Below are positions 1-52,864 of a stretch of DNA of 64,000 bases, piece after piece. The number at the start of each line of letters is the position of its first letter. The first letter of the stretch is position 1. Source of the DNA: Macrostomum lignano. Lineage: Eukaryota. The notes below the pieces were generated by a model. It did not search any database, was not told where the DNA came from, and saw only the letters and a program-made list of their open reading frames with translations. The translations under genes were made by a program, and so were the position numbers. Location of the stretch: NCBI GenBank assembly GCA_002269645.1, contig NIVC01001166.1, positions 124,001-188,000 of the forward strand, written 5' to 3'.

Positions 1-2751
1 AGTCGCTGCAGCGCTACTCGCGTCGCATCTGGCTGCAGCGCCGCTCGCGACTGCTCGACCGAGGTCACGACCGAGTTGTCGAACGGGCCTCCGATGCTTC
101 TAAGCCGCGACAGTCGATCCGCCATCAGTCTGGCCACTTCCTCGTTCATTGACCTGTCTGGCTGCGCCTGTTGTTCTACTACTGCTGCGTCGTCCGGTAT
201 CACCTGCGTTTCCTCTTTCTCGTCCTCTGCTAAAGCGGCCGCCGTGGCGCCTCTCTCGTCTACGCGACGTCTGTACTCGCCCAGCTCCGAGTCGAGTCGC
301 TGCAGCGCTACTCGCGTCGCATCTGGCTGCAGCGCCGCTCGCGACTGCTCGACCGAGGTCACGACCGAGTTGTCGAACGGGCCTCCGATGCTTCTAAGCC
401 GCGACAGTCGATCCGCCATCAGTCTGGCCACTTCCTCGTTCATTGACCTGTCTGGCTGCGCCTGTTGTTCTACTACTGCTGCGTCGTCCGGTATCACCTG
501 CGTTTCCTCTTTCTCGTCCTCTGCTAAAGCGGCCGCCGTGGCGCCTCTCTCGTCTACGCGACGTCTGTACTCGCCCAGCTCCGAGTCGAGTCGCTGCAGC
601 GCTACTCGCGTCGCATCTGGCTGCAGCGCCGCTCGCGACTGCTCGACCGAGGTCACGACCGAGTTGTCGAACGGGCCTCCGATGCTTCTAAGCCGCGACA
701 GTCGATCCGCCATCAGTCTGGCCACTTCCTCGTTCATTGACCTGTCTGGCTGCGCCTGTTGTTCTACTACTGCTGCGTCGTCCGGTATCACCTGCGTTTC
801 CTCTTTCTCGTCCTCTGCTAAAGCGGCCGCCGTGGCGCCTCTCTCGTCTACGCGACGTCTGTACTCGCCCAGCTCCGAGTCGAGTCGCTGCAGCGCTACT
901 CGCGTCGCATCTGGCTGCAGCGCCGCTCGCGACTGCTCGACCGAGGTCACGACCGAGTTGTCGAACGGGCCTCCGATGCTTCTAAGCCGCGACAGTCGAT
1001 CCGCCATCAGTCTGGCCACTTCCTCGTTCATTGACCTGTCTGGCTGCGCCTGTTGTTCTACTACTGCTGCGTCGTCCGGTATCACCTGCGTTTCCTCTTT
1101 CTCGTCCTCTGCTAAAGCGGCCGCCGTGGCGCCTCTCTCGTCTACGCGACGTCTGTACTCGCCCAGCTCCGAGTCGAGTCGCTGCAGCACTACTCGCGTC
1201 GCATCTGGCTGCAGCGCCGCTCGCGACTGCTCGACCGAGGTCACGACCGAGTTGTCGAACGGGCCTCCGATGCTTCTAAGCCGCGACAGTCGATCCGCCA
1301 TCAGTCTGGCCACTTCCTCGTTCATTGACCTGTCTGGCTGCGCCTGTTGTTCTACTACTGCTGCGTCGTCCGGTATCACCTGCGTTTCCTCTTTCTCGTC
1401 CTCTGCTAAAGCGGCGCCGTGGCGCTCTCTCGTCTACGCGACGTCTGTACTCGCCCAGCTCCGAGTCGAGTCGCTGCAGCGCTACTCGCGTCGCATCTGG
1501 CTGCAGCGCCGCTCGCGACTGCTCGACCGAGGTCACGACCGAGTTGTCGAACGGGCCTCCGATGCTTCTAAGCCGCGACAGTCGATCCGCCATCAGTCTG
1601 GCCACTTCCTCGTTCATTGACCTGTCTGGCTGCGCCTGTTGTTCTACTACTGCTGCGTCGTCCGGTATCACCTGCGTTTCCTCTTTCTCGTCCTCTGCTA
1701 AAGCGGCCGCCGTGGCGCCTCTCTCGTCTACGCGACGTCTGTACTCGCCCAGCTCCGAGTCGAGTCGCTGCAGCGCTACTCGCGTCGCATCTGGCTGCAG
1801 CGCCGCTCGCGACTGCTCGACCGAGGTCACGACCGAGTTGTCGAAACGGGCCTCCGATGCTTCTAAGCCGCGACAGTCGATCCGCCATCAGTCTGGCCAC
1901 TTCCTCGTTCATTGACCTGTCTGGCTGCGCCTGTTGTTCTACTACTGCTGCGTCGTCCGGTATCACCTGCGTTTCCTCTTTCTCGTCCTCTGCTAAAGCG
2001 GCCGCCGTGGCGCCTCTCTCGTCTACGCGACGTCTGTACTCGCCCAGCTCCGAGTCGAGTCGCTGCAGCGCTACTCGCGTCGCATCTGGCTGCAGCGCCG
2101 CTCGCGACTGCTCGACCGAGGTCACGACCGAGTTGTCGAACGGGCCTCCGATGCTTCTAAGCCGCGACAGTCGATCCGCCATCAGTCTGGCCACTTCCTC
2201 GTTCATTGACCTGTCTGGCTGCGCCTGTTGTTCTACTACTGCTGCGTCGTCCGGTATCCCTGCGCCTCTCTCGTCCTCTGCTAAAGCGGCCGCGCGGCGC
2301 CTCTCTCGTCTACGCGACGTCTGTACTCGCCAGCTCCGAGTCGAGTCGCTGCAGCGCTACTACTCGCGTCGCATCTGGCTGCAGCGCCGCTCGCGACTGC
2401 TCGACCGAGGTCACGACCGAGTTGTCGAACGGGCCTCCGATGCTTCTAAGCCGCGACAGTCGATCCGCCATCAGAGTCTGGCCACTTCCTCGTTCATTGA
2501 CCTGTCTGGCTGCGCCTGTTGTTCTACTACTCTGCGCGTCGTCCGGTATCACCTGCGTTTCCTCTTTCTCGTCCTCTGCTAAGCGGCCGCCGTGGCGCCT
2601 CTCTCGTCTACGCGACGTCTGTACTCGCCCAGCTCCGAGTCGAGTCGCTGCAGCGCTACTCGCGTCGCATCTGGCTGCAGCGCCGCTCGCGACTGCTCGA
2701 CCGAGGTCACGACCGAGTTGTCGAACGGGCCTCCGATGCTTCTAAGCCGCG
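1..2751 (-). repeat. Coding-type tandem array A', about 9.4 units of 294 bp (98 aa per unit on the minus strand); partial paralogue of array A
   Basis: The minus strand reads MNEEVARLMADRLSRLRSIGGPFDNSVVTSVEQSRAALQPDATRVALQRLDSELGEYRRRVDERGATAAALAEDEKEETQVIPDDAAVVEQQAQPDRS repeatedly. The period is 294 (shadow ORF starts at 149, 443, 737, 1031). Units degrade with indels towards the gap. Confidence 0.95.
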
Positions 2752-2765
2752 NNNNNNNNNNNNNN
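2752..2765. other. Assembly gap (14 N)
   Basis: Run of N between two oppositely oriented repeat arrays; true size unknown. Confidence 0.99.
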
Positions 2766-5700
2766 GCGACTGAACGCGGAGCTGGCAGAGTACAAGCGCC
2801 GCCTTGATGAGATCACCGCAGCTGAACAGGCGGAAGCTGCAGCGCCAGAACAGGAGGAGGAAGAGCCAGAAGCTGAGCCGGTCGTCGAGGACGCGGCAAT
2901 GAACGCGGCACTGTTTGACGCTACGATCGAGCGACTGGCGCGTCTGAATCGCATCGGACTGTTCGACGCCTCGGTGCTGACGTCGGTGGAGCAGGCGCGA
3001 GCCGCGCTGCAGCATTCAGCTAGACCCGGAGCGATGCAGCGACTGAACGCGGAGCTGGCAGAGTACAAGCGCCGCCTTGATGAGATCACCGCAGCTGAAC
3101 AGGCGGAAGCTGCAGCGCCAGAACAGGAGGAGGAAGAGCCAGAAGCTGAGCCGGTCGTCGAGGACGCGGCAATGAACGCGGCACTGTTTGACGCTACGAT
3201 CGAGCGACTGGCGCGTCTGAATCGCATCGGACTGTTCGACGCCTCGGTGCTGACGTCGGTGGAGCAGGCGCGAGCCGCGCTGCAGCATTCAGCTAGACCC
3301 GGAGCGATGCAGCGACTGAACGCGGAGCTGGCAGAGTACAAGCGCCGCCTTGATGAGATCACCGCAGCTGAACAGGCGGAAGCTGCAGCGCCAGAACAGG
3401 AGGAGGAAGAGCCAGAAGCTGAGCCGGTCGTCGAGGACGCGGCAATGAACGCGGCACTGTTTGACGCTACGATCGAGCGACTGGCGCGTCTGAATCGCAT
3501 CGGACTGTTCGACGCCTCGGTGCTGACGTCGGTGGAGCAGGCGCGAGCCGCGCTGCAGCATTCAGCTAGACCCGGAGCGATGCAGCGACTGAACGCGGAG
3601 CTGGCAGAGTACAAGCGCCGCCTTGATGAGATCACCGCAGCTGAACAGGCGGAAGCTGCAGCGCCAGAACAGGAGGAGGAAGAGCCAGAAGCTGAGCCGG
3701 TCGTCGAGGACGCGGCAATGAACGCGGCACTGTTTGACGCTACGATCGAGCGACTGGCGCGTCTGAATCGCATCGGACTGTTCGACGCCTCGGTGCTGAC
3801 GTCGGTGGAGCAGGCGCGAGCCGCGCTGCAGCATTCAGCTAGACCCGGAGCGATGCAGCGACTGAACGCGGAGCTGGCAGAGTACAAGCGCCGCCTTGAT
3901 GAGATCACCGCAGCTGAACAGGCGGAAGCTGCAGCGCCAGAACAGGAGGAGGAAGAGCCAGAAGCTGAGCCGGTCGTCGAGGACGCGGCAATGAACGCGG
4001 CACTGTTTGACGCTACGATCGAGCGACTGGCGCGTCTGAATCGCATCGGACTGTTCGACGCCTCGGTGCTGACGTCGGTGGAGCAGGCGCGAGCCGCGCT
4101 GCAGCATTCAGCTAGACCCGGAGCGATGCAGCGACTGAACGCGGAGCTGGCAGAGTACAAGCGCCGCCTTGATGAGATCACCGCAGCTGAACAGGCGGAA
4201 GCTGCAGCGCCAGAACAGGAGGAGGAAGAGCCAGAAGCTGAGCCGGTCGTCGAGGACGCGGCAATGAACGCGGCACTGTTTGACGCTACGATCGAGCGAC
4301 TGGCGCGTCTGAATCGCATCGGACTGTTCGACGCCTCGGTGCTGACGTCGGTGGAGCAGGCGCGAGCCGCGCTGCAGCATTCAGCTAGACCCGGAGCGAT
4401 GCAGCGACTGAACGCGGAGCTGGCAGAGTACAAGCGCCGCCTTGATGAGATCACCGCAGCTGAACGAGGAAGCTCGTCGTCGAGGACGCGGCAATGAACG
4501 CGGCACTGTTTGACGCTACGATCGAGCGACTGGCGCGTCTGAATCGCATCGGACTGTTCGACGCCTCGGTGCTGACGTCGGTGGAGCAGGCGCGAGCCGC
4601 GCTGCAGCATTCAGCTAGACCCGGAGCGATGCAGCGACTGAACGCGGAGCTGGCAGAGTACAAGCGCCGCCTTGATGAGATCACCGCAGCTGAACAGGCG
4701 GAAGCTGCAGCGCCAGAACAGGAGGAAGAGCCAGAAGCTGAGCCGGTCGTCGAGGACGCGGCAATGAACGCGGCACTGTTTGACGCTACGATCGAGCGAC
4801 TGGCGCGTCTGAATCGCATCGGACTGTTCGACGCCTCGGTGCTGACGTCGGTGGAGCAGGCGCGAGCCGCGCTGCAGCATTCAGCTAGACCCGGAGCGAT
4901 GCAGCGACTGAACGCGGAGCTGGCAGAGTACAAGCGCCGCCTTGATGAGATCACCGCAGCTGAACAGGCGGAAGCTGCAGCGCCAGAACAGGAGGAGGAA
5001 GAGCCAGAAGCTGAGCCGGTCGTCGAGGACGCGGCAATGAACGCGGCACTGTTTGACGCTACGATCGAGCGACTGGCGCGTCTGAATCGCATCGGACTGT
5101 TCGACGCCTCGGTGCTGACGTCGGTGGAGCAGGCGCGAGCCGCGCTGCAGCATTCAGCTAGACCCGGAGCGATGCAGCGACTACAAGCGCGCCGCCTTGA
5201 TGAGATCACCGCAGCTGAACAGGCGGAAGCTGCAGCGCCAGAACAGGAGGAGGAAGAGCCAGAAGCTGAGCCGGTCGTCGAGGACGCGGCAATGAACGCG
5301 GCACTGTTTGACGCTACGATCGAGCGACTGGCGCGTCTGAATCGCATCGGACTGTTCGACGCCTCGGTGCTGACGTCGGTGGAGCAGGCGCGAGCCGCGC
5401 TGCAGCATTCAGCTAGACCCGGAGCGATGCAGCGACTGAACGCGGAGCTGGCAGAGTACAAGCGCCGCCTTGATGAGATCACCGCAGCTGAACAGGCGGA
5501 AGCTGCAGCGCCAGAACAGGAGGAGGAAGAGCCAGAAGCTGAGCCGGTCGTCGAGGACGCGGCAATGAACGCGGCACTGTTTGACGCTACGATCGAGCGA
5601 CTGGCGCGTCTGAATCGCATCGGACTGTTCGACGCCTCGGTGCTGACGTCGGTGGAGCAGGCGCGAGCCGCGCTGCAGCATTCAGCTAGACCCGGAGCGA

Positions 5701-7919
5701 TGCAGCGACTGAACGCGGAGCTGGCAGAGTACAAGCGCCGCCTTGATGAGATCACCGCAGCTGAACAGGCGGAAGCTGCAGCGCCAGAACAGGAGGAGGA
5801 AGAGCCAGAAGCTGAGCCGGTCGTCGAGGACGCGGCAATGAACGCGGCACTGTTTGACGCTACGATCGAGCGACTGGCGCGTCTGAATCGCATCGGACTG
5901 TTCGACGCCTCGGTGCTGACGTCGGTGGAGCAGGCGCGAGCCGCGCTGCAGCATTCAGCTAGACCCGGAGCGATGCAGCGACTGAACGCGGAGCTGGCAG
6001 AGTACAAGCGCCGCCTTGATGAGATCACCGCAGCTGAACAGGCGGAAGCTGCAGCGCCAGAACAGGAGGAGGAAGAGCCAGAAGCTGAGCCGGTCGTCGA
6101 GGACGCGGCAATGAACGCGGCACTGTTTGACGCTACGATCGAGCGACTGGCGCGTCTGAATCGCATCGGACTGTTCGACGCCTCGGTGCTGACGTCGGTG
6201 GAGCAGGCGCGAGCCGCGCTGCAGCATTCAGCTAGACCCGGAGCGATGCAGCGACTGAACGCGGAGCTGGCAGAGTACAAGCGCCGCCTTGATGAGATCA
6301 CCGCAGCTGAACAGGTCGTCGAGGACGCGGCAATGAACGCGGCACTGTTTGACGCTACGATCGAGCGACTGGCGCGTCTGAATCGCATCGGACTGTTCGA
6401 CGCCTCGGTGCTGACGTCGGTGGAGCAGGCGCGAGCCGCGCTGCAGCATTCAGCTAGACCCGGAGCGATGCAGCGACTGAACGCGGAGCTGGCAGAGTAC
6501 AAGCGCCGCCTTGATGAGATCACCGCAGCTGAACAGGCGGAAGCTGCAGCGCCAGAACAGGAGGAAGAGCCAGAAGCTGAGCCGGTCGTCGAGGACGCGG
6601 CAATGAACGCGGCACTGTTTGACGCTACGATCGAGCGACTGGCGCGTCTGAATCGCATCGGACTGTTCGACGCCTCGGTGCTGACGTCGGTGGAGCAGGC
6701 GCGAGCCGCGCTGCAGCATTCAGCTAGACCCGGAGCGATGCAGCGACTGAACGCGGAGCTGGCAGAGTACAAGCGCCGCCTTGATGAGATCACCGCAGCT
6801 GAACAGGCGGAAGCTGCAGCGCCAGAACAGGAGGAGGAAGAGCCAGAAGCTGAGCCGGTCGTCGAGGACGCGGCAATGAACGCGGCACTGTTTGACGCTA
6901 CGATCGAGCGACTGGCGCGTCTGAATCGCATCGGACTGTTCGACGCCTCGGTGCTGACGTCGGTGGAGCAGGCGCGAGCCGCGCTGCAGCATTCAGCTAG
7001 ACCCGGAGCGATGGCAGAGTACAAGCGCCGCCTTGATGAGATCACCGCAGCTGAACAGGCGGAAGCTGCAGCGCCAGAACAGGAGGAGGAAGAGCCAGAA
7101 GCTGAGCCGGTCGTCGAGGACGCGGCAATGAACGCGGCACTGTTTGACGCTACGATCGAGCGACTGGCGCGTCTGAATCGCATCGGACTGTTCGACGCCT
7201 CGGTGCTGACGTCGGTGGAGCAGGCGCGAGCCGCGCTGCAGCATTCAGCTAGACCCGGAGCGATGCAGCGACTGAACGCGGAGCTGGCAGAGTACAAGCG
7301 CCGCCTTGATGAGATCACCGCAGCTGAACAGGCGGAAGCTGCAGCGCCAGAACAGGAGGAGGAAGAGCCAGAAGCTGAGCCGGTCGTCGAGGACGCGGCA
7401 ATGAACGCGGCACTGTTTGACGCTACGATCGAGCGACTGGCGCGTCTGAATCGCATCGGACTGTTCGACGCCTCGGTGCTGACGTCGGTGGAGCAGGCGC
7501 GAGCCGCGCTGCAGCATTCAGCTAGACCCGGAGCGATGCAGCGACTGAACGCGGAGCTGGCAGAGTACAAGCGCCGCCTTGATGAGATCACCGCAGCTGA
7601 ACAGGCGGAAGCTGCAGCGCCAGAACAGGAGGAGGAAGAGCCAGAAGCTGAGCCGGTCGTCGAGGACGCGGCAATGAACGCGGCACTGTTTGACGCTACG
7701 ATCGAGCGACTGGCGCGTCTGAATCGCATCGGACTGTTCGACGCCTCGGTGCTGACGTCGGTGGAGCAGGCGCGAGCCGCGCTGCAGCATTCAGCTAGAC
7801 CCGGAGCGATGCAGCGACTGAACGCGGAGCTGGCAGAGTACAAGCGCCGCCTTGATGAGATCACCGCAGCTGAACAGGCGGAAGCTGCAGCGCCAGAACA
7901 GGAGGAGGAAGAGCCAGAA
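2766..7919 (+). repeat. Coding tandem array B, about 19 units of 273 bp (91 aa)
   Basis: Unit MNAALFDATIERLARLNRIGLFDASVLTSVEQARAALQHSARPGAMQRLNAELAEYKRRLDEITAAEQAEAAAPEQEEEEPEAEPVVEDAA. ATGs at 2899, 3172, 3445 etc. Units are near-identical, with several deletion variants. Confidence 0.97.
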
Positions 7920-10900
7920 CCAGATGATGAAGCATACATCCTCTCTGAAGCATTTGATGAAAATTTGACATCTTTTTCTAAACATTTTTATTCGACGGAT
8001 TCCATGGTGTGCAGCATTGATCGGCTTTTGAGCGTTTTTGATTGGTTTCGATATAGGGTTTATCGTGGTCTAACGTCATTTTGCTGCGTACTTCAGGCAC
8101 AGTTTGTTGGAGCTGCCCTTCGACAGTTAGTGCGTCAGCTTCAACTAATGACTTCATTGTGTAGAGAGGATTTGGTTTGTGGTCCTGTTAAAGAAATTCT
8201 TTTCGCGGTTCAGCAAGAACCTCTTTGGTCTGAGATTAGAAAGCGCAACGAGGCATCATTTTCATATCTCTCATTGTGGATTGAGAGGTTCGGTGACGCG
8301 GATGTTGTTCCCGCAGACGCTGCTTGTGTCGGTCTGCATTATTTTTCTGAGCAATATTTCTCAGCCGTGAAGACATTTCAGCGGTACGGTCAGTACTGGT
8401 CTGGCGTTCACGTATGTCTCCTGAAAATAAGTGAGACACTGCAGAGCCATATAACTGAAGCGTCTCGTAGTTACCGCGAAACAGTGTTGGCTATTGAAAG
8501 ATACGCCAGGCTAAGCAAATCTTTGACGAAATTCGAGTATGCTTTGCTAAAATCAATTCAATGTATTGTTCAGGCGGACAAAAATCATCTTGAAGTCATT
8601 CAGTGCGCTCTCTGCCGTATTCCAGTTCATCATCGTGAGTTAAGATATTTTTCGGAAGAAACGAGAGAAAAGCTACTTAAAGCGTATCTAAGTACCAACT
8701 TTCAAGGCAACACTTGGCAAAAGTACGCGATGCTATTCGCTAAGGCAGACGAAATGTTAGACTGTCATATGCAAGATAAAAAGAAGGCTAGAGCGGCAAG
8801 AAGGTCTATTTTTCGAATGAAACAACTCTTAAAGTACTTCACAACCGACTTCGATACAACAAAAACGTATATACTATCTACGGGAGTTTGGGAGCAACAA
8901 GACCGCACAGTCTCAAAACTACCTCAACTGGGGCCACTAATAGTCGAAATAGACAGCGATTCCGAAATCGCTGACGACCAGGTCCACCATCAAGGACTCG
9001 ACGTTATTAATCCAACGAAAATGTCACTTAAGTTTGACACGTTAGAAGAGCTATTGAACACGGAAGTGGCCAGACTCATGGCGGATCGACTGTCGCGGCT
9101 TAGAAGCATCGGAGGCCCGTTCGACAACTCGGTCGTGACCTCGGTCGAGCAGTCGCGAGCGGCGCTGCAGCCAGATGCGACGCGAGTAGCGCTGCAGCGA
9201 CTCGACTCGGAGCTGGGCGAGTACAGACGTCGCGTAGATGAGAGAGGCGCCCCGGCCGCTTTAGCAGAGGACGAGAAAGAGGAAGCGCAGGGGATACCGG
9301 ACGACGCAGCAGTAGTAGAACAACAGGCGCAGCCAGACAGGTCAATGAACGAGGAAGTGGCCAGACTCATGGCGGATCGACTGTCGCGGCTTAGAAGCAT
9401 CGGAGGCCCGTTCGACAACTCGGTCGTGACCTCGGTCGAGCAGTCGCGAGCGGCGCTGCAGCCAGATGCGACGCGAGTAGCGCTGCAGCGACTCGACTCG
9501 GAGCTGGGCGAGTACAGACGTCGCGTAGATGAGAGAGGCGCCCGGCCGCTTTAGCAGAGGACGAGAAAGAGGAAGCGCAGGGGATACCGGACGACGCAGC
9601 AGTAGTAGAACAACAGGCGCAGCCAGACAGGTCAATGAACGAGGAAGTGGCCAGACTCATGGCGGATCGACTGTCGCGGCTTAGAAGCATCGGAGGCCCG
9701 TTCGACAACTCGGTCGTGACCTCGGTCGAGCAGTCGCGAGCGGCGCTGCAGCCAGATGCGACGCGAGTAGCGCTGCAGCGACTCGACTCGGAGCTGGGCG
9801 AGTACAGACGTCGCGTAGATGAGAGAGGCGCCCCGGCCGCTTTAGCAGAGGACGAGAAAGAGGAAGCGCAGGGATACCGGACGACGCAGCAGTAGTAGAA
9901 CAACAGGCGCAGCCAGACAGGTCAATGAACGAGGAAGTGGCCAGACTCATGGCGGATCGACTGTCGCGGCTTAGAAGCATCGGAGGCCCGTTCGACAACT
10001 CGGTCGTGACCTCGGTCGAGCAGTCGCGAGCGGCGCTGCAGCCAGATGCGACGCGAGTAGCGCTGCAGCGACTCGACTCGGAGCTGGGCGAGTACAGACG
10101 TCGCGTAGATGAGAGAGGCGCCCGGCCGCTTTAGCAGAGGACGAGAAAGAGGAAGCGCAGGGGATACCGGACGACGCAGCAGTAGTAGAACAACAGGCGC
10201 AGCCAGACAGGTCAATGAACGAGGAAGTGGCCAGACTCATGGCGGATCGACTGTCGCGGCTTAGAAGCATCGGAGGCCCGTTCGACAACTCGGTCGTGAC
10301 CTCGGTCGAGCAGTCGCGAGCGGCGCTGCAGCCAGATGCGACGCGAGTAGCGCTGCAGCGACTCGACTCGGAGCTGGGCGAGTACAGACGTCGCGTAGAT
10401 GAGAGAGGCGCCCCGGCCGCTTTAGCAGAGGACGAGAAAGAGGAAGCGCAGGGGATACCGGACGACGCAGCAGTAGTAGAACAACAGGCGCAGCCAGACA
10501 GGTCAATGAACGAGGAAGTGGCCAGACTCATGGCGGATCGACTGTCGCGGCTTAGAAGCATCGGAGGCCCGTTCGACAACTCGGTCGTGACCTCGGTCGA
10601 GCAGTCGCGAGCGGCGCTGCAGCCAGATGCGACGCGAGTAGCGCTGCAGCGACTCGACTCGGAGCTGGGCGAGTACAGACGTCGCGTAGATGAGAGAGGC
10701 GCCCGGCCGCTTTAGCAGAGGACGAGAAAGAGGAAGCGCAGGGGATACCGGACGACGCAGCAGTAGTAGAACAACAGGCGCAGCCAGACAGGTCAATGAA
10801 CGAGGAAGTGGCCAGACTCATGGCGGATCGACTGTCGCGGCTTAGAAGCATCGGAGGCCCGTTCGACAACTCGGTCGTGACCTCGGTCGAGCAGTCGCGA

Positions 10901-13900
10901 GCGGCGCTGCAGCCAGATGCGACGCGAGTAGCGCTGCAGCGACTCGACTCGGAGCTGGGCGAGTACAGACGTCGCGTAGATGAGAGAGGCGCCCGGCCGC
11001 TTTAGCAGAGGACGAGAAAGAGGAAGCGCAGGGGATACCGGACGACGCAGCAGTAGTAGAACAACAGGCGCAGCCAGACAGGTCAATGAACGAGGAAGTG
11101 GCCAGACTCATGGCGGATCGACTGTCGCGGCTTAGAAGCATCGGAGGCCCGTTCGACAACTCGGTCGTGACCTCGGTCGAGCAGTCGCGAGCGGCGCTGC
11201 AGCCAGATGCGACGCGAGTAGCGCTGCAGCGACTCGACTCGGAGCTGGGCGAGTACAGACGTCGCGTAGATGAGAGAGGCGCCCCGGCCGCTTTAGCAGA
11301 GGACGAGAAAGAGGAAGCGCAGGGGATACCGGACGACGCAGCAGTAGTAGAACAACAGGCGCAGCCAGACAGGTCAATGAACGAGGAAGTGGCCAGACTC
11401 ATGGCGGATCGACTGTCGCGGCTTAGAAGCATCGGAGGCCCGTTCGACAACTCGGTCGTGACCTCGGTCGAGCAGTCGCGAGCGGCGCTGCAGCCAGATG
11501 CGACGCGAGTAGCGCTGCAGCGACTCGACTCGGAGCTGGGCGAGTACAGACGTCGCGTAGATGAGAGAGGCGCCCCGGCCGCTTTAGCAGAGGACGAGAA
11601 AGAGGAAGCGCAGGGGATACCGGACGACGCAGCAGTAGTAGAACAACAGGCGCAGCCAGACAGGTCAATGAACGAGGAAGTGGCCAGACTCATGGCGGAT
11701 CGACTGTCGCGGCTTAGAAGCATCGGAGGCCCGTTCGACAACTCGGTCGTGACCTCGGTCGAGCAGTCGCGAGCGGCGCTGCAGCCAGATGCGACGCGAG
11801 TAGCGCTGCAGCGACTCGACTCGGAGCTGGGCGAGTACAGACGTCGCGTAGATGAGAGAGGCGCCCCGGCCGCTTTAGCAGAGGACGAGAAAGAGGAAGC
11901 GCAGGGGATACCGGACGACGCAGCAGTAGTAGAACAACAGGCGCAGCCAGACAGGTCAATGAACGAGGAAGTGGCCAGACTCATGGCGGATCGACTGTCG
12001 CGGCTTAGAAGCATCGGAGGCCCGTTCGACAACTCGGTCGTGACCTCGGTCGAGCAGTCGCGAGCGGCGCTGCAGCCAGATGCGACGCGAGTAGCGCTGC
12101 AGCGACTCGACTCGGAGCTGGGCGAGTACAGACGTCGCGTAGATGAGAGAGGCGCCCCGGCCGCTTTAGCAGAGGACGAGAAAGAGGAAGCGCAGGGGAT
12201 ACCGGACGACGCAGCAGTAGTAGAACAACAGGCGCAGCCAGACAGGTCAATGAACGAGGAAGTGGCCAGACTCATGGCGGATCGACTGTCGCGGCTTAGA
12301 AGCATCGGAGGCCCGTTCGACAACTCGGTCGTGACCTCGGTCGAGCAGTCGCGAGCGGCGCTGCAGCCAGATGCGACGCGAGTAGCGCTGCAGCGACTCG
12401 ACTCGGAGCTGGGCGAGTACAGACGTCGCGTAGATGAGAGAGGCGCCCCGGCCGCTTTAGCAGAGGACGAGAAAGAGGAAGCGCAGGGGATACCGGACGA
12501 CGCAGCAGTAGTAGAACAACAGGCGCAGCCAGACAGGTCAATGAACGAGGAAGTGGCCAGACTCATGGCGGATCGACTGTCGCGGCTTAGAAGCATCGGA
12601 GGCCCGTTCGACAACTCGGTCGTGACCTCGGTCGAGCAGTCGCGAGCGGCGCTGCAGCCAGATGCGACGCGAGTAGCGCTGCAGCGACTCGACTCGGAGC
12701 TGGGCGAGTACAGACGTCGCGTAGATGAGAGAGGCGCCCCGGCCGCTTTAGCAGAGGACGAGAAAGAGGAAGCGCAGGGGATACCGGACGACGCAGCAGT
12801 AGTAGAACAACAGGCGCAGCCAGACAGGTCAATGAACGAGGAAGTGGCCAGACTCATGGCGGATCGACTGTCGCGGCTTAGAAGCATCGGAGGCCCGTTC
12901 GACAACTCGGTCGTGACCTCGGTCGAGCAGTCGCGAGCGGCGCTGCAGCCAGATGCGACGCGAGTAGCGCTGCAGCGACTCGACTCGGAGCTGGGCGAGT
13001 ACAGACGTCGCGTAGATGAGAGAGGCGCCCGGCCGCTTTAGCAGAGGACGAGAAAGAGGAAGCGCAGGGGATACCGGACGACGCAGCAGTAGTAGAACAA
13101 CAGGCGCAGCCAGACAGGTCAATGAACGAGGAAGTGGCCAGACTCATGGCGGATCGACTGTCGCGGCTTAGAAGCATCGGAGGCCCGTTCGACAACTCGG
13201 TCGTGACCTCGGTCGAGCAGTCGCGAGCGGCGCTGCAGCCAGATGCGACGCGAGTAGCGCTGCAGCGACTCGACTCGGAGCTGGGCGAGTACAGACGTCG
13301 CGTAGATGAGAGAGGCGCCCCGGCCGCTTTAGCAGAGGACGAGAAAGAGGAAGCGCAGGGGATACCGGACGACGCAGCAGTAGTAGAACAACAGGCGCAG
13401 CCAGACAGGTCAATGAACGAGGAAGTGGCCAGACTCATGGCGGATCGACTGTCGCGGCTTAGAAGCATCGGAGGCCCGTTCGACAACTCGGTCGTGACCT
13501 CGGTCGAGCAGTCGCGAGCGGCGCTGCAGCCAGATGCGACGCGAGTAGCGCTGCAGCGACTCGACTCGGAGCTGGGCGAGTACAGACGTCGCGTAGATGA
13601 GAGAGGCGCCCGGCCGCTTTAGCAGAGGACGAGAAAGAGGAAGCGCAGGGGATACCGGACGACGCAGCAGTAGTAGAACAACAGGCGCAGCCAGACAGGT
13701 CAATGAACGAGGAAGTGGCCAGACTCATGGCGGATCGACTGTCGCGGCTTAGAAGCATCGGAGGCCCGTTCGACAACTCGGTCGTGACCTCGGTCGAGCA
13801 GTCGCGAGCGGCGCTGCAGCCAGATGCGACGCGAGTAGCGCTGCAGCGACTCGACTCGGAGCTGGGCGAGTACAGACGTCGCGTAGATGAGAGAGGCGCC

Positions 13901-16900
13901 CCGGCCGCTTTAGCAGAGGACGAGAAAGAGGAAGCGCAGGGGATACCGGACGACGCAGCAGTAGTAGAACAACAGGCGCAGCCAGACAGGTCAATGAACG
14001 AGGAAGTGGCCAGACTCATGGCGGATCGACTGTCGCGGCTTAGAAGCATCGGAGGCCCGTTCGACAACTCGGTCGTGACCTCGGTCGAGCAGTCGCGAGC
14101 GGCGCTGCAGCCAGATGCGACGCGAGTAGCGCTGCAGCGACTCGACTCGGAGCTGGGCGAGTACAGACGTCGCGTAGATGAGAGAGGCGCCCGGCCGCTT
14201 TAGCAGAGGACGAGAAAGAGGAAGCGCAGGGGATACCGGACGACGCAGCAGTAGTAGAACAACAGGCGCAGCCAGACAGGTCAATGAACGAGGAAGTGGC
14301 CAGACTCATGGCGGATCGACTGTCGCGGCTTAGAAGCATCGGAGGCCCGTTCGACAACTCGGTCGTGACCTCGGTCGAGCAGTCGCGAGCGGCGCTGCAG
14401 CCAGATGCGACGCGAGTAGCGCTGCAGCGACTCGACTCGGAGCTGGGCGAGTACAGACGTCGCGTAGATGAGAGAGGCGCCCCGGCCGCTTTAGCAGAGG
14501 ACGAGAAAGAGGAAGCGCAGGGGATACCGGACGACGCAGCAGTAGTAGAACAACAGGCGCAGCCAGACAGGTCAATGAACGAGGAAGTGGCCAGACTCAT
14601 GGCGGATCGACTGTCGCGGCTTAGAAGCATCGGAGGCCCGTTCGACAACTCGGTCGTGACCTCGGTCGAGCAGTCGCGAGCGGCGCTGCAGCCAGATGCG
14701 ACGCGAGTAGCGCTGCAGCGACTCGACTCGGAGCTGGGCGAGTACAGACGTCGCGTAGATGAGAGAGGCGCCCGGCCGCTTTAGCAGAGGACGAGAAAGA
14801 GGAAGCGCAGGGGATACCGGACGACGCAGCAGTAGTAGAACAACAGGCGCAGCCAGACAGGTCAATGAACGAGGAAGTGGCCAGACTCATGGCGGATCGA
14901 CTGTCGCGGCTTAGAAGCATCGGAGGCCCGTTCGACAACTCGGTCGTGACCTCGGTCGAGCAGTCGCGAGCGGCGCTGCAGCCAGATGCGACGCGAGTAG
15001 CGCTGCAGCGACTCGACTCGGAGCTGGGCGAGTACAGACGTCGCGTAGATGAGAGAGGCGCCCCGGCCGCTTTAGCAGAGGACGAGAAAGAGGAAGCGCA
15101 GGGGATACCGGACGACGCAGCAGTAGTAGAACAACAGGCGCAGCCAGACAGGTCAATGAACGAGGAAGTGGCCAGACTCATGGCGGATCGACTGTCGCGG
15201 CTTAGAAGCATCGGAGGCCCGTTCGACAACTCGGTCGTGACCTCGGTCGAGCAGTCGCGAGCGGCGCTGCAGCCAGATGCGACGCGAGTAGCGCTGCAGC
15301 GACTCGACTCGGAGCTGGGCGAGTACAGACGTCGCGTAGATGAGAGAGGCGCCCGGCCGCTTTAGCAGAGGACGAGAAAGAGGAAGCGCAGGGGATACCG
15401 GACGACGCAGCAGTAGTAGAACAACAGGCGCAGCCAGACAGGTCAATGAACGAGGAAGTGGCCAGACTCATGGCGGATCGACTGTCGCGGCTTAGAAGCA
15501 TCGGAGGCCCGTTCGACAACTCGGTCGTGACCTCGGTCGAGCAGTCGCGAGCGGCGCTGCAGCCAGATGCGACGCGAGTAGCGCTGCAGCGACTCGACTC
15601 GGAGCTGGGCGAGTACAGACGTCGCGTAGATAGAGAGGCGCCCCGGCCGCTTTAGCAGAGGACGAGAAAGAGGAAGCGCAGGGGATACCGGACGACGCAG
15701 CAGTAGTAGAACAACAGGCGCAGCCAGACAGGTCAATGAACGAGGAAGTGGCCAGACTCATGGCGGATCGACTGTCGCGGCTTAGAAGCATCGGAGGCCC
15801 GTTCGACAACTCGGTCGTGACCTCGGTCGAGCAGTCGCGAGCGGCGCTGCAGCCAGATGCGACGCGAGTAGCGCTGCAGCGACTCGACTCGGAGCTGGGC
15901 GAGTACAGACGTCGCGTAGATAAGAGAGGCGCCCCGGCCGCTTTAGCAGAGGACGAGAAAGAGGAAGCGCAGGGGATACCGGACGACGCAGCAGTAGTAG
16001 AACAACAGGCGCAGCCAGACAGGTCAATGAACGAGGAAGTGGCCAGACTCATGGCGGATCGACTGTCGCGGCTTAGAAGCATCGGAGGCCCGTTCGACAA
16101 CTCGGTCGTGACCTCGGTCGAGCAGTCGCGAGCGGCGCTGCAGCCAGATGCGACGCGAGTAGCGCTGCAGCGACTCGACTCGGAGCTGGGCGAGTACAGA
16201 CGTCGCGTAGATGAGAGAGGCGCCCGGCCGCTTTAGCAGAGGACGAGAAAGAGGAAGCGCAGGGGATACCGGACGACGCAGCAGTAGTAGAACAACAGGC
16301 GCAGCCAGACAGGTCAATGAACGAGGAAGTGGCCAGACTCATGGCGGATCGACTGTCGCGGCTTAGAAGCATCGGAGGCCCGTTCGACAACTCGGTCGTG
16401 ACCTCGGTCGAGCAGTCGCGAGCGGCGCTGCAGCCAGATGCGACGCGAGTAGCGCTGCAGCGACTCGACTCGGAGCTGGGCGAGTACAGACGTCGCGTAG
16501 ATGAGAGAGGCGCCCCGGCCGCTTTAGCAGAGGACGAGAAAGAGGAAGCGCAGGGGATACCGGACGACGCAGCAGTAGTAGAACAACAGGCGCAGCCAGA
16601 CAGGTCAATGAACGAGGAAGTGGCCAGACTCATGGCGGATCGACTGTCGCGGCTTAGAAGCATCGGAGGCCCGTTCGACAACTCGGTCGTGACCTCGGTC
16701 GAGCAGTCGCGAGCGGCGCTGCAGCCAGATGCGACGCGAGTAGCGCTGCAGCGACTCGACTCGGAGCTGGGCGAGTACAGACGTCGCGTAGATGAGAGAG
16801 GCGCCCCGGCCGCTTTAGCAGAGGACGAGAAAGAGGAAGCGCAGGGGATACCGGACGACGCAGCAGTAGTAGAACAACAGGCGCAGCCAGACAGGTCAAT

Positions 16901-19900
16901 GAACGAGGAAGTGGCCAGACTCATGGCGGATCGACTGTCGCGGCTTAGAAGCATCGGAGGCCCGTTCGACAACTCGGTCGTGACCTCGGTCGAGCAGTCG
17001 CGAGCGGCGCTGCAGCCAGATGCGACGCGAGTAGCGCTGCAGCGACTCGACTCGGAGCTGGGCGAGTACAGACGTCGCGTAGATAAGAGAGGCGCCCGGC
17101 CGCTTTAGCAGAGGACGAGAAAGAGGAAGCGCAGGGGATACCGGACGACGCAGCAGTAGTAGAACAACAGGCGCAGCCAGACAGGTCAATGAACGAGGAA
17201 GTGGCCAGACTCATGGCGGATCGACTGTCGCGGCTTAGAAGCATCGGAGGCCCGTTCGACAACTCGGTCGTGACCTCGGTCGAGCAGTCGCGAGCGGCGC
17301 TGCAGCCAGATGCGACGCGAGTAGCGCTGCAGCGACTCGACTCGGAGCTGGGCGAGTACAGACGTCGCGTAGATAGAGAGGCGCCCCGGCCGCTTTAGCA
17401 GAGGACGAGAAAGAGGAAGCGCAGGGGATACCGGACGACGCAGCAGTAGTAGAACAACAGGCGCAGCCAGACAGGTCAATGAACGAGGAAGTGGCCAGAC
17501 TCATGGCGGATCGACTGTCGCGGCTTAGAAGCATCGGAGGCCCGTTCGACAACTCGGTCGTGACCTCGGTCGAGCAGTCGCGAGCGGCGCTGCAGCCAGA
17601 TGCGACGCGAGTAGCGCTGCAGCGACTCGACTCGGAGCTGGGCGAGTACAGACGTCGCGTAGATGAGAGAGGCGCCCCGGCCGCTTTAGCAGAGGACGAG
17701 AAAGAGGAAGCGCAGGGGATACCGGACGACGCAGCAGTAGTAGAACAACAGGCGCAGCCAGACAGGTCAATGAACGAGGAAGTGGCCAGACTCATGGCGG
17801 ATCGACTGTCGCGGCTTAGAAGCATCGGAGGCCCGTTCGACAACTCGGTCGTGACCTCGGTCGAGCAGTCGCGAGCGGCGCTGCAGCCAGATGCGACGCG
17901 AGTAGCGCTGCAGCGACTCGACTCGGAGCTGGGCGAGTACAGACGTCGCGTAGATGAGAGAGGCGCCCCGGCCGCTTTAGCAGAGGACGAGAAAGAGGAA
18001 GCGCAGGGGATACCGGACGACGCAGCAGTAGTAGAACAACAGGCGCAGCCAGACAGGTCAATGAACGAGGAAGTGGCCAGACTCATGGCGGATCGACTGT
18101 CGCGGCTTAGAAGCATCGGAGGCCCGTTCGACAACTCGGTCGTGACCTCGGTCGAGCAGTCGCGAGCGGCGCTGCAGCCAGATGCGACGCGAGTAGCGCT
18201 GCAGCGACTCGACTCGGAGCTGGGCGAGTACAGACGTCGCGTAGATGAGAGAGGCGCCCCGGCCGCTTTAGCAGAGGACGAGAAAGAGGAAGCGCAGGGA
18301 TACCGGACGACGCAGCAGTAGTAGAACAACAGGCGCAGCCAGACAGGTCAATGAACGAGGAAGTGGCCAGACTCATGGCGGATCGACTGTCGCGGCTTAG
18401 AAGCATCGGAGGCCCGTTCGACAACTCGGTCGTGACCTCGGTCGAGCAGTCGCGAGCGGCGCTGCAGCCAGATGCGACGCGAGTAGCGCTGCAGCGACTC
18501 GACTCGGAGCTGGGCGAGTACAGACGTCGCGTAGATAAGAGAGGCGCCCCGGCCGCTTTAGCAGAGGACGAGAAAGAGGAAGCGCAGGGGATACCGGACG
18601 ACGCAGCAGTAGTAGAACAACAGGCGCAGCCAGACAGGTCAATGAACGAGGAAGTGGCCAGACTCATGGCGGATCGACTGTCGCGGCTTAGAAGCATCGG
18701 AGGCCCGTTCGACAACTCGGTCGTGACCTCGGTCGAGCAGTCGCGAGCGGCGCTGCAGCCAGATGCGACGCGAGTAGCGCTGCAGCGACTCGACTCGGAG
18801 CTGGGCGAGTACAGACGTCGCGTAGATAGAGAGGCGCCCCGGCCGCTTTAGCAGAGGACGAGAAAGAGGAAGCGCAGGGGATACCGGACGACGCAGCAGT
18901 AGTAGAACAACAGGCGCAGCCAGACAGGTCAATGAACGAGGAAGTGGCCAGACTCATGGCGGATCGACTGTCGCGGCTTAGAAGCATCGGAGGCCCGTTC
19001 GACAACTCGGTCGTGACCTCGGTCGAGCAGTCGCGAGCGGCGCTGCAGCCAGATGCGACGCGAGTAGCGCTGCAGCGACTCGACTCGGAGCTGGGCGAGT
19101 ACAGACGTCGCGTAGATGAGAGAGGCGCCCCGGCCGCTTTAGCAGAGGACGAGAAAGAGGAAGCGCAGGGGATACCGGACGACGCAGCAGTAGTAGAACA
19201 ACAGGCGCAGCCAGACAGGTCAATGAACGAGGAAGTGGCCAGACTCATGGCGGATCGACTGTCGCGGCTTAGAAGCATCGGAGGCCCGTTCGACAACTCG
19301 GTCGTGACCTCGGTCGAGCAGTCGCGAGCGGCGCTGCAGCCAGATGCGACGCGAGTAGCGCTGCAGCGACTCGACTCGGAGCTGGGCGAGTACAGACGTC
19401 GCGTAGATGAGAGAGGCGCCCCGGCCGCTTTAGCAGAGGACGAGAAAGAGGAAGCGCAGGGGATACCGGACGACGCAGCAGTAGTAGAACAACAGGCGCA
19501 GCCAGACAGGTCAATGAACGAGGAAGTGGCCAGACTCATGGCGGATCGACTGTCGCGGCTTAGAAGCATCGGAGGCCCGTTCGACAACTCGGTCGTGACC
19601 TCGGTCGAGCAGTCGCGAGCGGCGCTGCAGCCAGATGCGACGCGAGTAGCGCTGCAGCGACTCGACTCGGAGCTGGGCGAGTACAGACGTCGCGTAGATG
19701 AGAGAGGCGCCCCGGCCGCTTTAGCAGAGGACGAGAAAGAGGAAGCGCAGGGATACCGGACGACGCAGCAGTAGTAGAACAACAGGCGCAGCCAGACAGG
19801 TCAATGAACGAGGAAGTGGCCAGACTCATGGCGGATCGACTGTCGCGGCTTAGAAGCATCGGAGGCCCGTTCGACAACTCGGTCGTGACCTCGGTCGAGC

Positions 19901-20460
19901 AGTCGCGAGCGGCGCTGCAGCCAGATGCGACGCGAGTAGCGCTGCAGCGACTCGACTCGGAGCTGGGCGAGTACAGACGTCGCGTAGATGAGACAGGCGC
20001 CGCTTCAGCTCTAGTAGAAGAGGAGGATATTGATTCGGAGCGGAAATCGGCGTCGACACTTTTTCCGGTCCCTTTGTCTAGTCCTCGGTATTCGCAGGGC
20101 ATTGCAAGTCCTAGTCCGGAGCTTATTGATGGTGTTTCGGCATTGTCTACTCTTGACGGATATTCAATGCCTTCATTTGGTATTGGTGCACCATCATTAT
20201 TGGTTTCGCCGTTGGAGGAGTTTGTTGAGCTAGATTCTAGGTCGATGCGGAACCTGCAGTCCGGTGACGCAGCCGACATGCTGGATTACTTGGCTGCTCA
20301 AGTTCGGCGTGCGGACGCAGCCGTTTTCCAGGTGCTATCTGATAGAAGCCGCTTGCTGTCGGCGGATGAGAACTGTCTACAAAATATTAACTCATCGTTT
20401 CAGGTCATTGAGAATCGGTTTGGTGACTCGAACATTACCAAGGCAAATTTGGAGCAATAG
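2767..20460 (+). CDS. Giant tandem-repeat protein (5'-partial, about 5,900 aa if frameshifts are repaired): array B, unique 380 aa, array A, unique ~155-aa C-terminus
   Basis: ORF 4494-9554 runs in frame from array B through the unique region into array A. ORF 19804-20460 runs in frame from the last A unit into a unique tail ending at TAG 20458-20460. The interruptions are one garbled deletion near 4466-4490 and 17 single-base deletions at three recurrent sites in the A unit. No introns are needed. Confidence 0.7.
9057..19993 (+). repeat. Coding tandem array A, about 38 units of 291 bp (97 aa)
   Basis: Unit MNEEVARLMADRLSRLRSIGGPFDNSVVTSVEQSRAALQPDATRVALQRLDSELGEYRRRVDERGAPAALAEDEKEEAQGIPDDAAVVEQQAQPDRS. 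The longest uninterrupted run is 11086-13041. Confidence 0.97.
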
Positions 20461-22900: not shown

Positions 22901-23140
22901 CTCAGGATTTGACTTTCAACTACAGGAAAATTGGGTGGATTAGTACACTTTGAACCTCTTTAAGCTCTGGTCGATGGCCGGTTTTTATGATTTACAGCTG
23001 TATAAAAAAGTGTTCTTCTCGAACAATTTCGCTAAGCTAAATTGAAAAAGTGAGTTCAGCAGCTGTTTGAATTTCAGACAACATCAAGATCGAACAGTCT
23101 CCAAGCTGAACAGCCAAAGTACAGTCGGCGCCAGAGGCGC

Positions 23141-26100: not shown

Positions 26101-27269
26101 TTTCCCAAGTCCATTCCACTTGCCCAAATCCACTGCAACATGCCCTAATCCATTCCACTTGCCCAAATCCACTGCAACATGCCCTAATCCACTGCAACAT
26201 GCCCTAATCCACTACAACCTGCCCTAATCCACTGCAACCTGCCATAATCCACTGCAACCTGCCCTAATCCACTGCAACTTGCCATAATCCACTGCAACCT
26301 GCCATAATCCACTGCAACCTGCCCTAATCCACTACAACCTGCCCTAATCCACTGCAACAGTGCTACATGCTTTGCCCCCAAACCAGATACCTGCACAGCA
26401 CTTTTCTACGCGATTTCGGCCAGCTACGCGCCGCCTACCTGAGCGGCGCCGTCACCTGGGAGAAATTCGCCCTCGTCCTGCAGTCGATGGACGCCCAAGT
26501 TGCGACTTTCAGCGCCGCCAACGCGCCAGTCGAAGCCGAAGTTGTGAGACGCGCGGCGCACCGCTACAAGCGCCTGCTGAAGGTGTTCGCTCGCTCGTTC
26601 GACACGGACGCTTACTATTTGCGGACCAGCCAGACGGTCCAGCAGGAGGCCGAATTGGCTGCCAAACTGCCGCGGCTGATGCCGTTCAAAAATCGGCAGG
26701 CCCTCCTGGCGGAAGCTGCCGCTGAAGGCGAGGATGCGGAGGAGGTTGAAGACGAGGACGCCAAGAGCGACTCGCCGATTCTGGAGCTGCGCCGCTACCT
26801 CACGGAGCAGCTGTCAGCGGCTGAAGGAGGCCGCCATCGCGGCTGGCCGGGGCACCGGAATCGTCGGGACGGCGACGGCGACGGCGACGGCGGCAGCAGC
26901 GGCGGCGGCGGCGACGGCGACGGTGACGTTGTTCAGCAGCGACGTCTTAGCGAGTCGACAAACGAAGCGGAATCCAGGGGCGGCGGCGGCCGGAGCGGCG
27001 GCTTGCGAACGCTGAAGTTTCTGAAATCGATGCCCCAAGAGCGGCTGGCCCGGCTGGTGCAGCCGGGCGACACGCTGATGCCGCTGCTGCAGCGAATCGA
27101 GCGTCACCTCGGCCTGGTGCAGGACTGCCTGGACGACTTGCCGCGCAACGGAGTCGAGCCGCTCACCGTAGCGCAGCAGGCGCGGCGCCGAAAAATCAGC
27201 GCCGATGTCAACCTTCTGCTTGGCTCCGTGGCCCGCCTCATGCGGCTCTCCGCGGCTAGGCAGCGATGA
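23141..27269 (+). CDS. Hypothetical protein, 4 exons (23141-23320, 24647-24993, 25500-25877, 26387-27269), about 595 aa
   Basis: GC-rich exons with compatible phases (0, 2, 2). Donors are GTGGTT, GTGGGT and GTCAGT; acceptors are AAG, CAG and CAG. The spliced frame is continuous (e.g. PIDR|FLYLYRCPACG and NTQHGR|YLHSTF). The exon 1-2 junction is the least certain. Confidence 0.7.
23755..23985. repeat. Degenerate GC-rich short tandem repeat (GCCATCGGAGGGC-like) in intron 1
   Basis: About 15 recurrences of GCCATCG(G) separated by G-runs. Confidence 0.85.
24129..24488 (-). pseudogene. Peptidase M13 (neprilysin/ECE)-like C-terminal exon or fragment, probably non-catalytic
   Basis: The translation ...KQMFFTVAVQLMYRRDSSGAAVKQFNGPIRKETRVNLGMSQNKEFAQAFNCGLSSSLNPKDKCTYWKHFN* matches the M13 C-terminal pattern QLFF...RVN..LSN..EFA.AFNC...S.MNP..KC..W. 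No upstream M13 exons were recognised in the window. Confidence 0.65.
25900..26360. repeat. Two adjacent 20-bp minisatellites (TCCACTCCAACCTGCTCCAG; TAATCCACTGCAACCTGCCC) filling intron 3
   Basis: Tandem units occupy almost all of intron 25878-26386. Confidence 0.92.
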
Positions 27270-28172: not shown

Positions 28173-28428
28173 GAGTATCATGGGTTTTCGTGTCGCTGAT
28201 GTAGTAGTTTTCAATGGCCTTCCAGCTTCCAGTAGTTGATTACAGCTTCTGGGGCGTTGATTTCCAATCAGTTTAAAGGGCTAAAAATAAATTCAAACAT
28301 TACTAATCTATGGCAACCAGGGACAAGTTGAAAGGGAAATACCTGCAAGAGAAAGAACTGGCATCAAATGCGTGCCTGCTAAGGAACCGACGGCTTAAAC
28401 TGAATATTTGTTTTGAAACCCAAGCATC

Positions 28429-31143
<2,715 letters not shown>

Positions 31144-45847: not shown

Positions 45848-46010
45848 ATTAGGATTAAGGTTAGGGTTAGGCAGGTTTAGGGTAGGGTTAGGGTAGGGTT
45901 AAGGTATTGTTAGATTAGGGTTGGGGTTGGGGTTAGGGTAGGGTAAGGGTTAGGGTGAAGTTAGGGGAGGGGTTAGAGTTAGGGGTAGAGTTAGGATTAG
46001 GCTATAGGGT
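45848..46010 (+). repeat. Degenerate interstitial telomere-like (TTAGGG)n tract
   Basis: Many TTAGGG, TAGGG and TTGGGG variants. Confidence 0.75.
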
Positions 46011-46062
46011 TTGAGCCCAATTATTATTTATTATTTATTCTGGTGTATTCTGTGGAAAAAAC

Positions 46063-52833: not shown

Positions 52834-52864
<31 letters not shown>

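Follow-up and report, generated by a model that had tools for sequence, protein, structure and literature searches.

Organization of the repeat gene in the window

The window analyzed in this work is a stretch of 64,000 nucleotides of the Macrostomum lignano genome, C1166:124001-188000, and its left part contains what are probably the 3′ two-thirds of one copy of a genuine coding gene for a giant, lineage-restricted, intracellular repeat protein. Coordinates given below are window positions unless a contig is named; C838, C912, C1166, C2841 and C2842 are contig labels of the M. lignano assembly Mlig_3_7.

The layout of the locus was determined with Tandem Repeats Finder and anchor counts. On the plus strand, array B (2766-7919), made up of 19 units of 273 bp (91 amino acids, aa), is followed by U2 (7920-9056), an open frame of 52% GC corresponding to a unique domain of ~380 aa that is predicted to be all-alpha. 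Next comes array A (9057-19989, with 38 anchors at 9055-20001), composed of 37.7 units of 291 bp (97 aa). Its translation continues into an acidic unique tail of 155 aa (19990-20457), in which a Ser/Pro-rich stretch precedes a predicted helical end, and then into a TAG stop codon (20458-20460) that is the same in the copy of the gene on C838. This succession of arrays, unique region, tail and stop codon had been proposed in a preliminary description of the sequence, and repeat finding placed each part at the positions given there.

To the left of array B lie a scaffold gap of 14 N (2752-2765) and, on the minus strand, an inverted A′ array with ~9.4 units of 294 bp (98 aa), identified by repeat finding and alignment, which occupies positions 1-2751 and runs off the window. 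The gap is an artificial junction of two contigs, each of which ends inside a repeat array, and the inverted A′ array is part not of the plus-strand gene but of another copy of the locus, which lies inverted on this scaffold. Because the assembly is broken at this gap, the gene of the window is truncated at its 5′ side inside array B. Position 2767, from which the gene had been described as extending, comes right after the 14-N gap and marks an assembly break instead of an N-terminus.

Units within each array are nearly invariant. In array B, 12 of the 18 complete units are identical, and the length variants of 270 bp (two units), 255, 252 and 222 bp all keep the frame; the frame is broken by a 43-bp deletion near 4466-4510, which leaves a unit of 230 bp. 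The 37 complete units of array A that were aligned are identical save for three kinds of change: loss of a C from the sole C4 run (11 units), loss of a G from the sole G4 run (3 units), and changes in the GA-repeat run GAGAGAGG, where a G is missing in 3 units and replaced by A in 3 others. As a result, 17 units of array A measure 290 bp, each being one base short, and produce 17 frame breaks. Together with the break in array B, they divide the plus strand as assembled into 19 stop-to-stop open reading frames (ORFs), the longest ORF of the gene being that at 4464-9554 (1,696 aa). The architecture of a giant protein with domains arranged like beads on a string thus stands, but the single continuous reading frame formerly attributed to it is not present in the sequence as assembled. 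Aligned with each other, the A and B units show 53% identity.

Full gene plan in other copies of the locus

The 5,270 scaffolds of Mlig_3_7 amount to 764,424,962 bp, one of them being a mitochondrial genome that was added separately (PMC5730564; PMC8629364), and our six-frame search with U2 covered 764,410,778 bp in 5,269 scaffolds. Close copies of U2 were found on C838 (97% protein identity) and on C2842 (93-97% over three matched pieces), and more distant domains, 22-26% identical, on C2841, C838 and C2842. Overall, the tail, U2 and U1 (a second unique domain, described below) are each represented three times in the genome and the 5′ end five times, so that at least three copies of the gene are present. 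Such several near-identical copies are in line with the origin of the assembly, since the sequenced line is a neopolyploid with much duplicated sequence (PMC5730564). The tails on C838 and at C1166:121146-121613 (minus strand) are each 96% identical to that of the window.

The copy on C838 displays the whole plan on one strand over ~18 kb, with only two frame breaks. It consists of a Met, 20 D units, U1, 18 B units, U2, 11.5 A′ units, the tail and the stop codon, and three ORFs of 2,325, 326 and 3,351 aa jointly cover the distance from Met to stop, giving a product of ~6,040 aa. On C2841, a single ORF of 10,021 aa contains 26 D units (354 bp, 118 aa), U1 (~370 aa) and at least 75 B units that reach the end of the contig. 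Three contigs have a common 5′ flank, and the ORF begins with ATG GAA AGA AAA, encoding MERKSSEKA[L/S]KQPPEE, which is followed directly by the first D unit; two codons upstream of the ATG, C838 and C2841 have a TAA. The N-terminus, MERKSSEKALKQPPEE, is hydrophilic and therefore has no signal peptide. In fact, neither a signal peptide nor a transmembrane segment was seen in any part of the protein, so that what had been noted for the part available in the window applies also to the N-terminus of the other copies.

Based on these copies, the full plan of the gene is a Met, 17-26 D units (118 aa), U1 (~370 aa), 18 to at least 94 B units (91 aa), U2 (~380 aa), 11-38 A or A′ units (97 or 98 aa) and the 155-aa tail, all in one exon. 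There are accordingly three repeat blocks (D, B and A) and two unique domains, and not two repeat blocks as described from the window. The proposal that the units are internal domains and not separate genes is supported. Judging from their sequences, the D, B and A units are diverged forms of one module, whose invariant core motif is RLxxLxxxGxxDxSVxTSVxxxRAxLxxxA...RLxxxLxxY. U1, located between the D and B arrays, and U2 are paralogous, with 22-26% (about 25%) identity.

We regard it as highly probable that a giant intronless gene with this D-U1-B-U2-A-tail architecture is real. If intact, it would give rise to a transcript of 18-49 kb, extending from just upstream of ATGGAAAGAAAA to beyond 20460. 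No clear AATAAA was found within 400 nt after the stop codon, which is uninformative, and Rfam gave no match in the window. Elimination points to C2841 (D-U1-B...) as the likely source of the 5′ part that the window copy lacks, and C2842 would pair with the inverted copy. If joined to C2841, the window copy would possibly encode at least ~16,200 aa (~1.75 MDa). The earlier estimate of at least ~5,900 aa thus describes a 5′-truncated fragment of the assembly; the whole window copy may reach ~16,000 aa.

Assembly history and homogeneity of the arrays

Mlig_3_7 was produced with Canu from PacBio continuous long reads (CLR), polished with short reads using Pilon and scaffolded with SSPACE, which writes gap sizes as estimates (PMC5730564). 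Such a history is expected to leave one-base homopolymer deletions, which short reads are unable to repair inside identical repeats, as well as N gaps, whose sizes are estimates, at contig ends that fell within arrays.

Both effects can be recognized at this locus. The inverted A′ array extends to C1166:121770, with the second tail lying beyond it. An inverted second 3′ half of the locus, with A′ array, tail, downstream genes and satellites, occupies C1166:94001-124000 together with window positions 1-2765. The region of the window between 19.9 and 40 kb is collinear, at 95-98% identity, with C838 as well as with C1166:94-124 kb in reverse complement. These collinear inverted flanks show that on C1166 two 3′ halves have been joined at the N gap in head-to-head orientation. 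On C912, two 5′ ends face each other and meet inside D arrays. The head-to-head joins on C1166 and C912 are probably best read as assembly or scaffolding artefacts inside repeats.

Homogeneity of the units extends beyond single arrays. The majority B unit (273 bp) is base-for-base the same in the window, C838, C2841 and C2842, and the D units (354 bp) do not differ either, be it within an array or from copy to copy, whereas the unique regions differ by ~2%. For U2, the comparison between the window and C838 gave 98.2% nucleotide identity, with 21 substitutions and no indels. The identity of the units reflects either concerted evolution across homeologs or homogenization through read correction and polishing.

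Frame breaks: consensus errors or decay

The 18 frame breaks of the window copy are most likely PacBio consensus errors. All breaks in array A are one-base deletions, 14 of the 17 falling in the only two homopolymers of at least four bases and the remaining three in the GA-repeat run, while substitutions affect only three units. Deletions restricted to such sites, together with the near absence of substitutions, favor an assembly error, since the real divergence between copies, as seen in U2, consists of substitutions only. Moreover, the same kind of one-base deletion occurs on C2841 in a non-coding flank, as compared with two other contigs. The noise in A arrays is also uneven: units range from 289 to 295 bp on C2842 and on the inverted C1166 copy, while C838 is clean, suggesting that it tracks contig quality.

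A rather unlikely alternative is that the gene family is real but the window copy is a true pseudogene, which acquired real frameshifts after a recent genome duplication and in which a 290-bp unit was amplified within array A. The 18 frame-breaking lesions in the window, compared with two over the whole C838 copy, could be expected from a decaying duplicate, as could the six length variants of the window array B, since other copies have at most one. Additionally, A units 13-22 (12570-15475) alternate strictly between 291 and 290 bp, a pattern that is odd for random consensus error and might represent a 581-bp higher-order repeat. Nevertheless, every lesion in array A bears the signature of PacBio CLR errors, the U2 and tail of this same copy are intact and open, and indel noise of variable quality is found elsewhere, for instance in the A units of C2842.

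Evidence for coding

An open frame is not by itself rare in sequences of this kind. Dinucleotide shuffles of a single GC-rich unit were open in 4-18% of cases, and in every unit type one antisense frame is open as well. Openness of the arrays alone is therefore weak evidence, and the case for coding rests on several observations combined. The same figures would speak for regarding the arrays as non-coding GC-rich satellites that are open in one frame by chance, an explanation that we consider extremely improbable.

All four periods (354, 273, 291 and 294 bp) are divisible by three, and among the length variants of array B, five of the six units (four of the five length classes) remain in frame. 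The ratio of non-synonymous to synonymous divergence (dN/dS) between unit types is below one in every comparison (A-B 0.42, A-D 0.23, B-D 0.58), with dS values of 0.9-2.8 that are near saturation, and 18 core positions are invariant over the three unit types. The tail, U1 and U2, with lengths of about 155-380 aa, share one open frame with the arrays. Despite their low identity, U1 and U2 each remain open for ~370-380 codons at ~52% GC, and with U3, the corresponding domain of a neighboring gene (see below), they form a paralogous set at 22-32% identity. Between the window and C838, the codon changes in U2 are 9 synonymous and 11 non-synonymous. The copies also agree in their start and stop codons.

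Parts of the gene are also found in GenBank. The partial proteins BOX15_Mlig011518g1, g2 and g3 (PAA54916.1, PAA54909.1 and PAA76189.1) cover D and U1, and a model of 1,010 aa on C838 spans B units, U2 and A′ units. The models in GenBank go back to transcripts assembled from RNA-seq data, with a filter applied for annotated repeats (PMC5730564). Given how they were made, transcription across the junctions is suggested, and the repeat filter explains why the gene was never annotated as a whole. So far it is present in databases only as scattered fragments named "hypothetical protein, partial".

Predicted structure of the units and family searches

Examples of unit peptides are IGLFDASVLTSVEQAR, SIGGPFDNSVVTSVEQSR and ASGLYDESVLTSVGMAR. 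Two B units were modeled with AlphaFold2 from a four-row alignment of the unit types (mean predicted local distance difference test score, pLDDT, of 73). In the model, helices span residues 2-21, 26-39 and 47-74 of the unit, with pLDDT ~80, and are followed by a linker with pLDDT below 50; the pattern repeats in the second unit. On inspection, hydrophobic residues in the helices follow a 3-4-3-4 spacing, as in a small bundle. The core of ~65 residues is nearly neutral (net charge +1), and the units contain no Trp. The linkers have 25-54 residues, a net charge of -8 to -11 and a composition of 81-100% Pro, Glu, Val, Lys, Ala, Gln and Asp, with PEVK-type residues making up 35-60%. The computed net charge of the whole protein is about -400 to -1,400. 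The module would thus be composed of three amphipathic helices and a disordered acidic linker, and the AlphaFold2 model fits the previous idea of small folded domains on acidic flexible linkers. For U2, the model was all-helical but of low confidence (pLDDT 46).

These features bear on two other ways in which the repeats could be used. In the first, a small helical protein or peptide would be released in ~100 copies by cleavage of a polyprotein precursor, as with the nematode polyprotein allergens or profilaggrin. The near-identical tandem units in a single exon and a conserved di- or tribasic motif occurring once per unit (YKRR, YRRR, YKKQ) would suit such a precursor. We find it very unlikely, however: a signal peptide is absent at the N-terminus, the basic motif lies inside predicted helix 3 of the model and not in the linkers, which are purely acidic and devoid of basic cleavage sites, two large unique domains are interleaved with the arrays, and Pfam gave no match to known polyprotein families. 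The polyprotein option of the preliminary description is thus not supported.

In the second, the protein would be a multivalent scaffold, in which each three-helix module binds a small partner (cytoskeletal or Ca2+-binding) through the invariant G..D.SV.TSV loop, leading to a periodic assembly like that of Sfi1-type centrin-binding proteins. The invariance of 18 core positions although synonymous sites are near saturation would be accounted for in this way, as would the presence of 50-160 identical modules. On the other hand, there are only three independent unit types, and 30% invariance is not unusual for a folded core; moreover, Pfam found no motif of a known binding repeat in the units, U2 or tail, and no partner is known. 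We regard this scaffold as an unlikely but live alternative, less improbable than the polyprotein.

Searches for relatives of the protein returned little. Pfam searches with single units, longer runs of units, U2 and the tail yielded nothing beyond scores summed over repeats or noise below threshold. No relative was revealed by profile searches of PDB sequences with the unit and the U domain, and a Foldseek search of the PDB with the unit model found generic helical bundles, with a best E-value of 0.18; the same search with the low-confidence U2 model gave a meaningless result. A phmmer search with U2 against 1.84 billion cluster representatives returned only the U1 fragment of the same genome, and word-indexed protein searches with U2, the joined U3 gene and a unit profile returned only M. 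lignano proteins. CH, EF-hand, plakin, GAR and KASH domains were found neither by Pfam in U2 and the tail nor by PDB profiles of U1 and U2, and the GenBank fragment of U1 carries no precomputed Pfam domain. Likewise, Ig, Fn3 and Pkinase had no Pfam match in the units, U2 or tail.

Two candidate families were rejected. One of the GenBank fragments bears a precomputed label for the helical bimodular sensor domain HBM (PF16591), but each A unit covers only profile positions 177-212 of 254 (15 bits, E = 0.014), and the score of 60 bits is a sum over six repeats. In the case of Spectrin (PF00435), single A, B and D units had no match even at E<=10, and six B units taken together reached 31.7 bits, with no individual stretch passing. 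As no single unit matches Spectrin, Ig or Fn3, the comparison with spectrin and titin made from the window sequence is one of style and not of family membership. On the other hand, the statement that the protein could not be placed in a known family agrees with our Pfam, PDB, Foldseek and phmmer checks. In the databases searched, then, the family formed by the three-helix unit and the U domain is without detectable sequence relative outside M. lignano. It appears to be a new protein family of the giant tandem-module structural kind, restricted to Macrostomum as far as seen and not recognized as one gene in public annotation.

Neighboring paralogue and other features of the window

Downstream of the giant gene, sequence comparison identified plus-strand exons (24629-27269) of a multi-exon paralogue that contains U3 (GenBank Mlig024800.g1/g2). 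U3 is 28-32% identical to the C-terminal parts (last ~90 aa) of U1 and U2, and the gene has no repeat array; its product shows no Pfam domain and no relative outside M. lignano. A unit-like module following the U domain was considered and dropped (hhalign E = 0.39). Possible further exons of Mlig024800 lie at 23054-23398 and 28417-28782. The position of this paralogue, adjoining the giant gene, suggests that the latter probably arose by local duplication beside a smaller U-domain gene, followed by repeat expansion. Once formed, the arrays would grow, shrink and stay homogeneous through unequal exchange or gene conversion.

Exons of a Na+:dicarboxylate/excitatory amino-acid transporter-type gene (Pfam SDF, E down to 8.5e-33) are found on the minus strand at 42287-45773, with introns filled by 15-bp and 8-bp satellites (43037-43497 and 43930-45258). 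Neighbors such as this SLC1-type transporter are thus split by satellite-filled introns, whereas no intron is needed in the giant gene, as had been pointed out before.

Other repeats and ORFs are scattered along the window. Degenerate TTAGGG telomere-type interstitial repeats (~28 copies) are located at 45849-46011. An intact-looking ORF of 348 aa at 48583-49629 (minus strand) has a sub-threshold DDE_3 match (27.0 bits against a cutoff of 28.6) and a weak helix-turn-helix, suggesting a Tc1/mariner-type transposase. Also on the minus strand, at 51349-53643, an ORF of 764 aa without Pfam match encodes an extended mucin-like region rich in Thr and Pro, a single hydrophobic segment and a tail made up of 11-aa repeats (KTDDSKKPEAA); its opposite strand is a (TTG)n-type microsatellite. 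On the plus strand, a (CTA)171 microsatellite at 29705-30219 lies in an ORF of 697 aa and would encode ~170 consecutive Thr if exonic. Finally, an ORF of 424 aa at 35967-37241 (plus strand) has several hydrophobic segments, resembles a multi-pass membrane protein and matched nothing in Pfam; a (CAGA)116 microsatellite lies ahead of it.

Possible function and significance

If intact, the product would be an intracellular chain in which 50-160 small helical bundles alternate with polyanionic Pro-rich linkers. With bundles folded, its contour length is estimated at ~1-2.5 µm (taking 0.38 nm per linker residue and ~4 nm per bundle). Such a chain may work as an extensible entropic spring, spacer or tether, as the PEVK region of titin does in series with folded domains, and U1, U2 and the tail, being the sole non-repeated surfaces, would anchor it to partners. 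We put forward this spring or tether mechanism tentatively. Equally tentative is the wider proposal of an intact single-exon protein of ~0.65-1.75 MDa, with no relative outside Macrostomum and with 50-160 modules kept identical by ongoing concerted evolution across homeologs, which would serve flatworm cells as an elastic or spacing element not described before, for instance in muscle, in the elaborate sperm or in the cell web of the epidermis.

Several points weigh against an intact giant protein of this kind. With 18 breaks in the assembled sequence, the window copy could be a duplicate in decay. Read correction and polishing may account for part of the identity of units, both within and between copies. 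Array lengths taken from a CLR assembly of identical units are unreliable, which applies directly to the figure of ~16,000 aa that we infer for the window copy. An upstream spliced exon, for example one carrying a signal peptide, is possible. The basis of the spring or tether is composition and a medium-confidence model from an alignment of four sequences, and the unit cores might be binding sites instead. Furthermore, the searchable literature and the checked supplements (one large table being covered in part) make no mention of Mlig011518 or Mlig024800 and contain no expression, tissue, localization or protein-level data for them, and the literature on Macrostomum satellites and giant repeat proteins contains no expression or localization data for the gene.

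If made intact, it would be one of the largest proteins of animals, built from domains of a family not recognized by any database. M. lignano is open to RNA interference and transgenesis, so that its cell-biological role is directly testable. The locus also offers a natural case for how identical coding repeats persist within arrays and between the duplicated chromosomes of a neopolyploid. At the same time, it shows how repeat masking and CLR consensus errors hide genes, with one gene split into partial records and scaffolds mis-joined in arrays.

Comparison with known systems

Giant repeat proteins are already known from M. lignano. Mlig-ap2, with 14,794 aa, carries two large tandem blocks (21 x 255 aa and 25 x 221 aa) set between unique regions, and its assembly is difficult as well (PMC8621496). 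Together with Mlig-ap1, it is a secreted gland adhesion protein with vWD, TIL, C8, LDL, TSP-1, EGF and lectin domains and with Lys/Arg/Gly-rich (GRK) or glycosylated repeats (PMC8621496). Identity of the present gene with Mlig-ap1 or Mlig-ap2 was rejected, as Pfam found none of these domains, the units are of 118, 91 and 97 aa and acidic, and there is no signal peptide.

Spectrin, dystrophin, the nesprins and the plakins are, like the M. lignano protein, long intracellular chains of tandem three-helix units, with elastic or scaffolding roles. The spectrin repeat, however, has ~106 aa, is contiguous with its neighbors through continuous helices and contains a conserved Trp in helix A, whereas the M. 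lignano core has ~65-74 aa, no Trp and disordered acidic linkers. Moreover, unlike spectrin-type repeats, the M. lignano units are identical at the DNA level. With the PEVK or poly-E segments of titin, the protein shares giant size and acidic disordered stretches rich in Pro, Glu, Val and Lys in series with folded domains. In titin, these domains are Ig and Fn3, together with a kinase, while in M. lignano they are helical; there is no kinase and no sequence similarity.

Head-to-tail arrays of near-identical small helical units are shared with the ABA-1-type nematode allergens and with profilaggrin. These have a signal peptide or an S100 head and cleavage sites between units, which were not seen in the M. 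lignano protein. A comparable gene organization is found in AHNAK and epiplakin. Although the former is built of 128-aa beta-type repeats with a PDZ N-terminus and the latter of plakin repeat domains, unlike the M. lignano protein, for which no similarity to them was found, both reach ~5,000-6,000 aa and are encoded, as here, by one giant exon with highly similar tandem units and unique ends.

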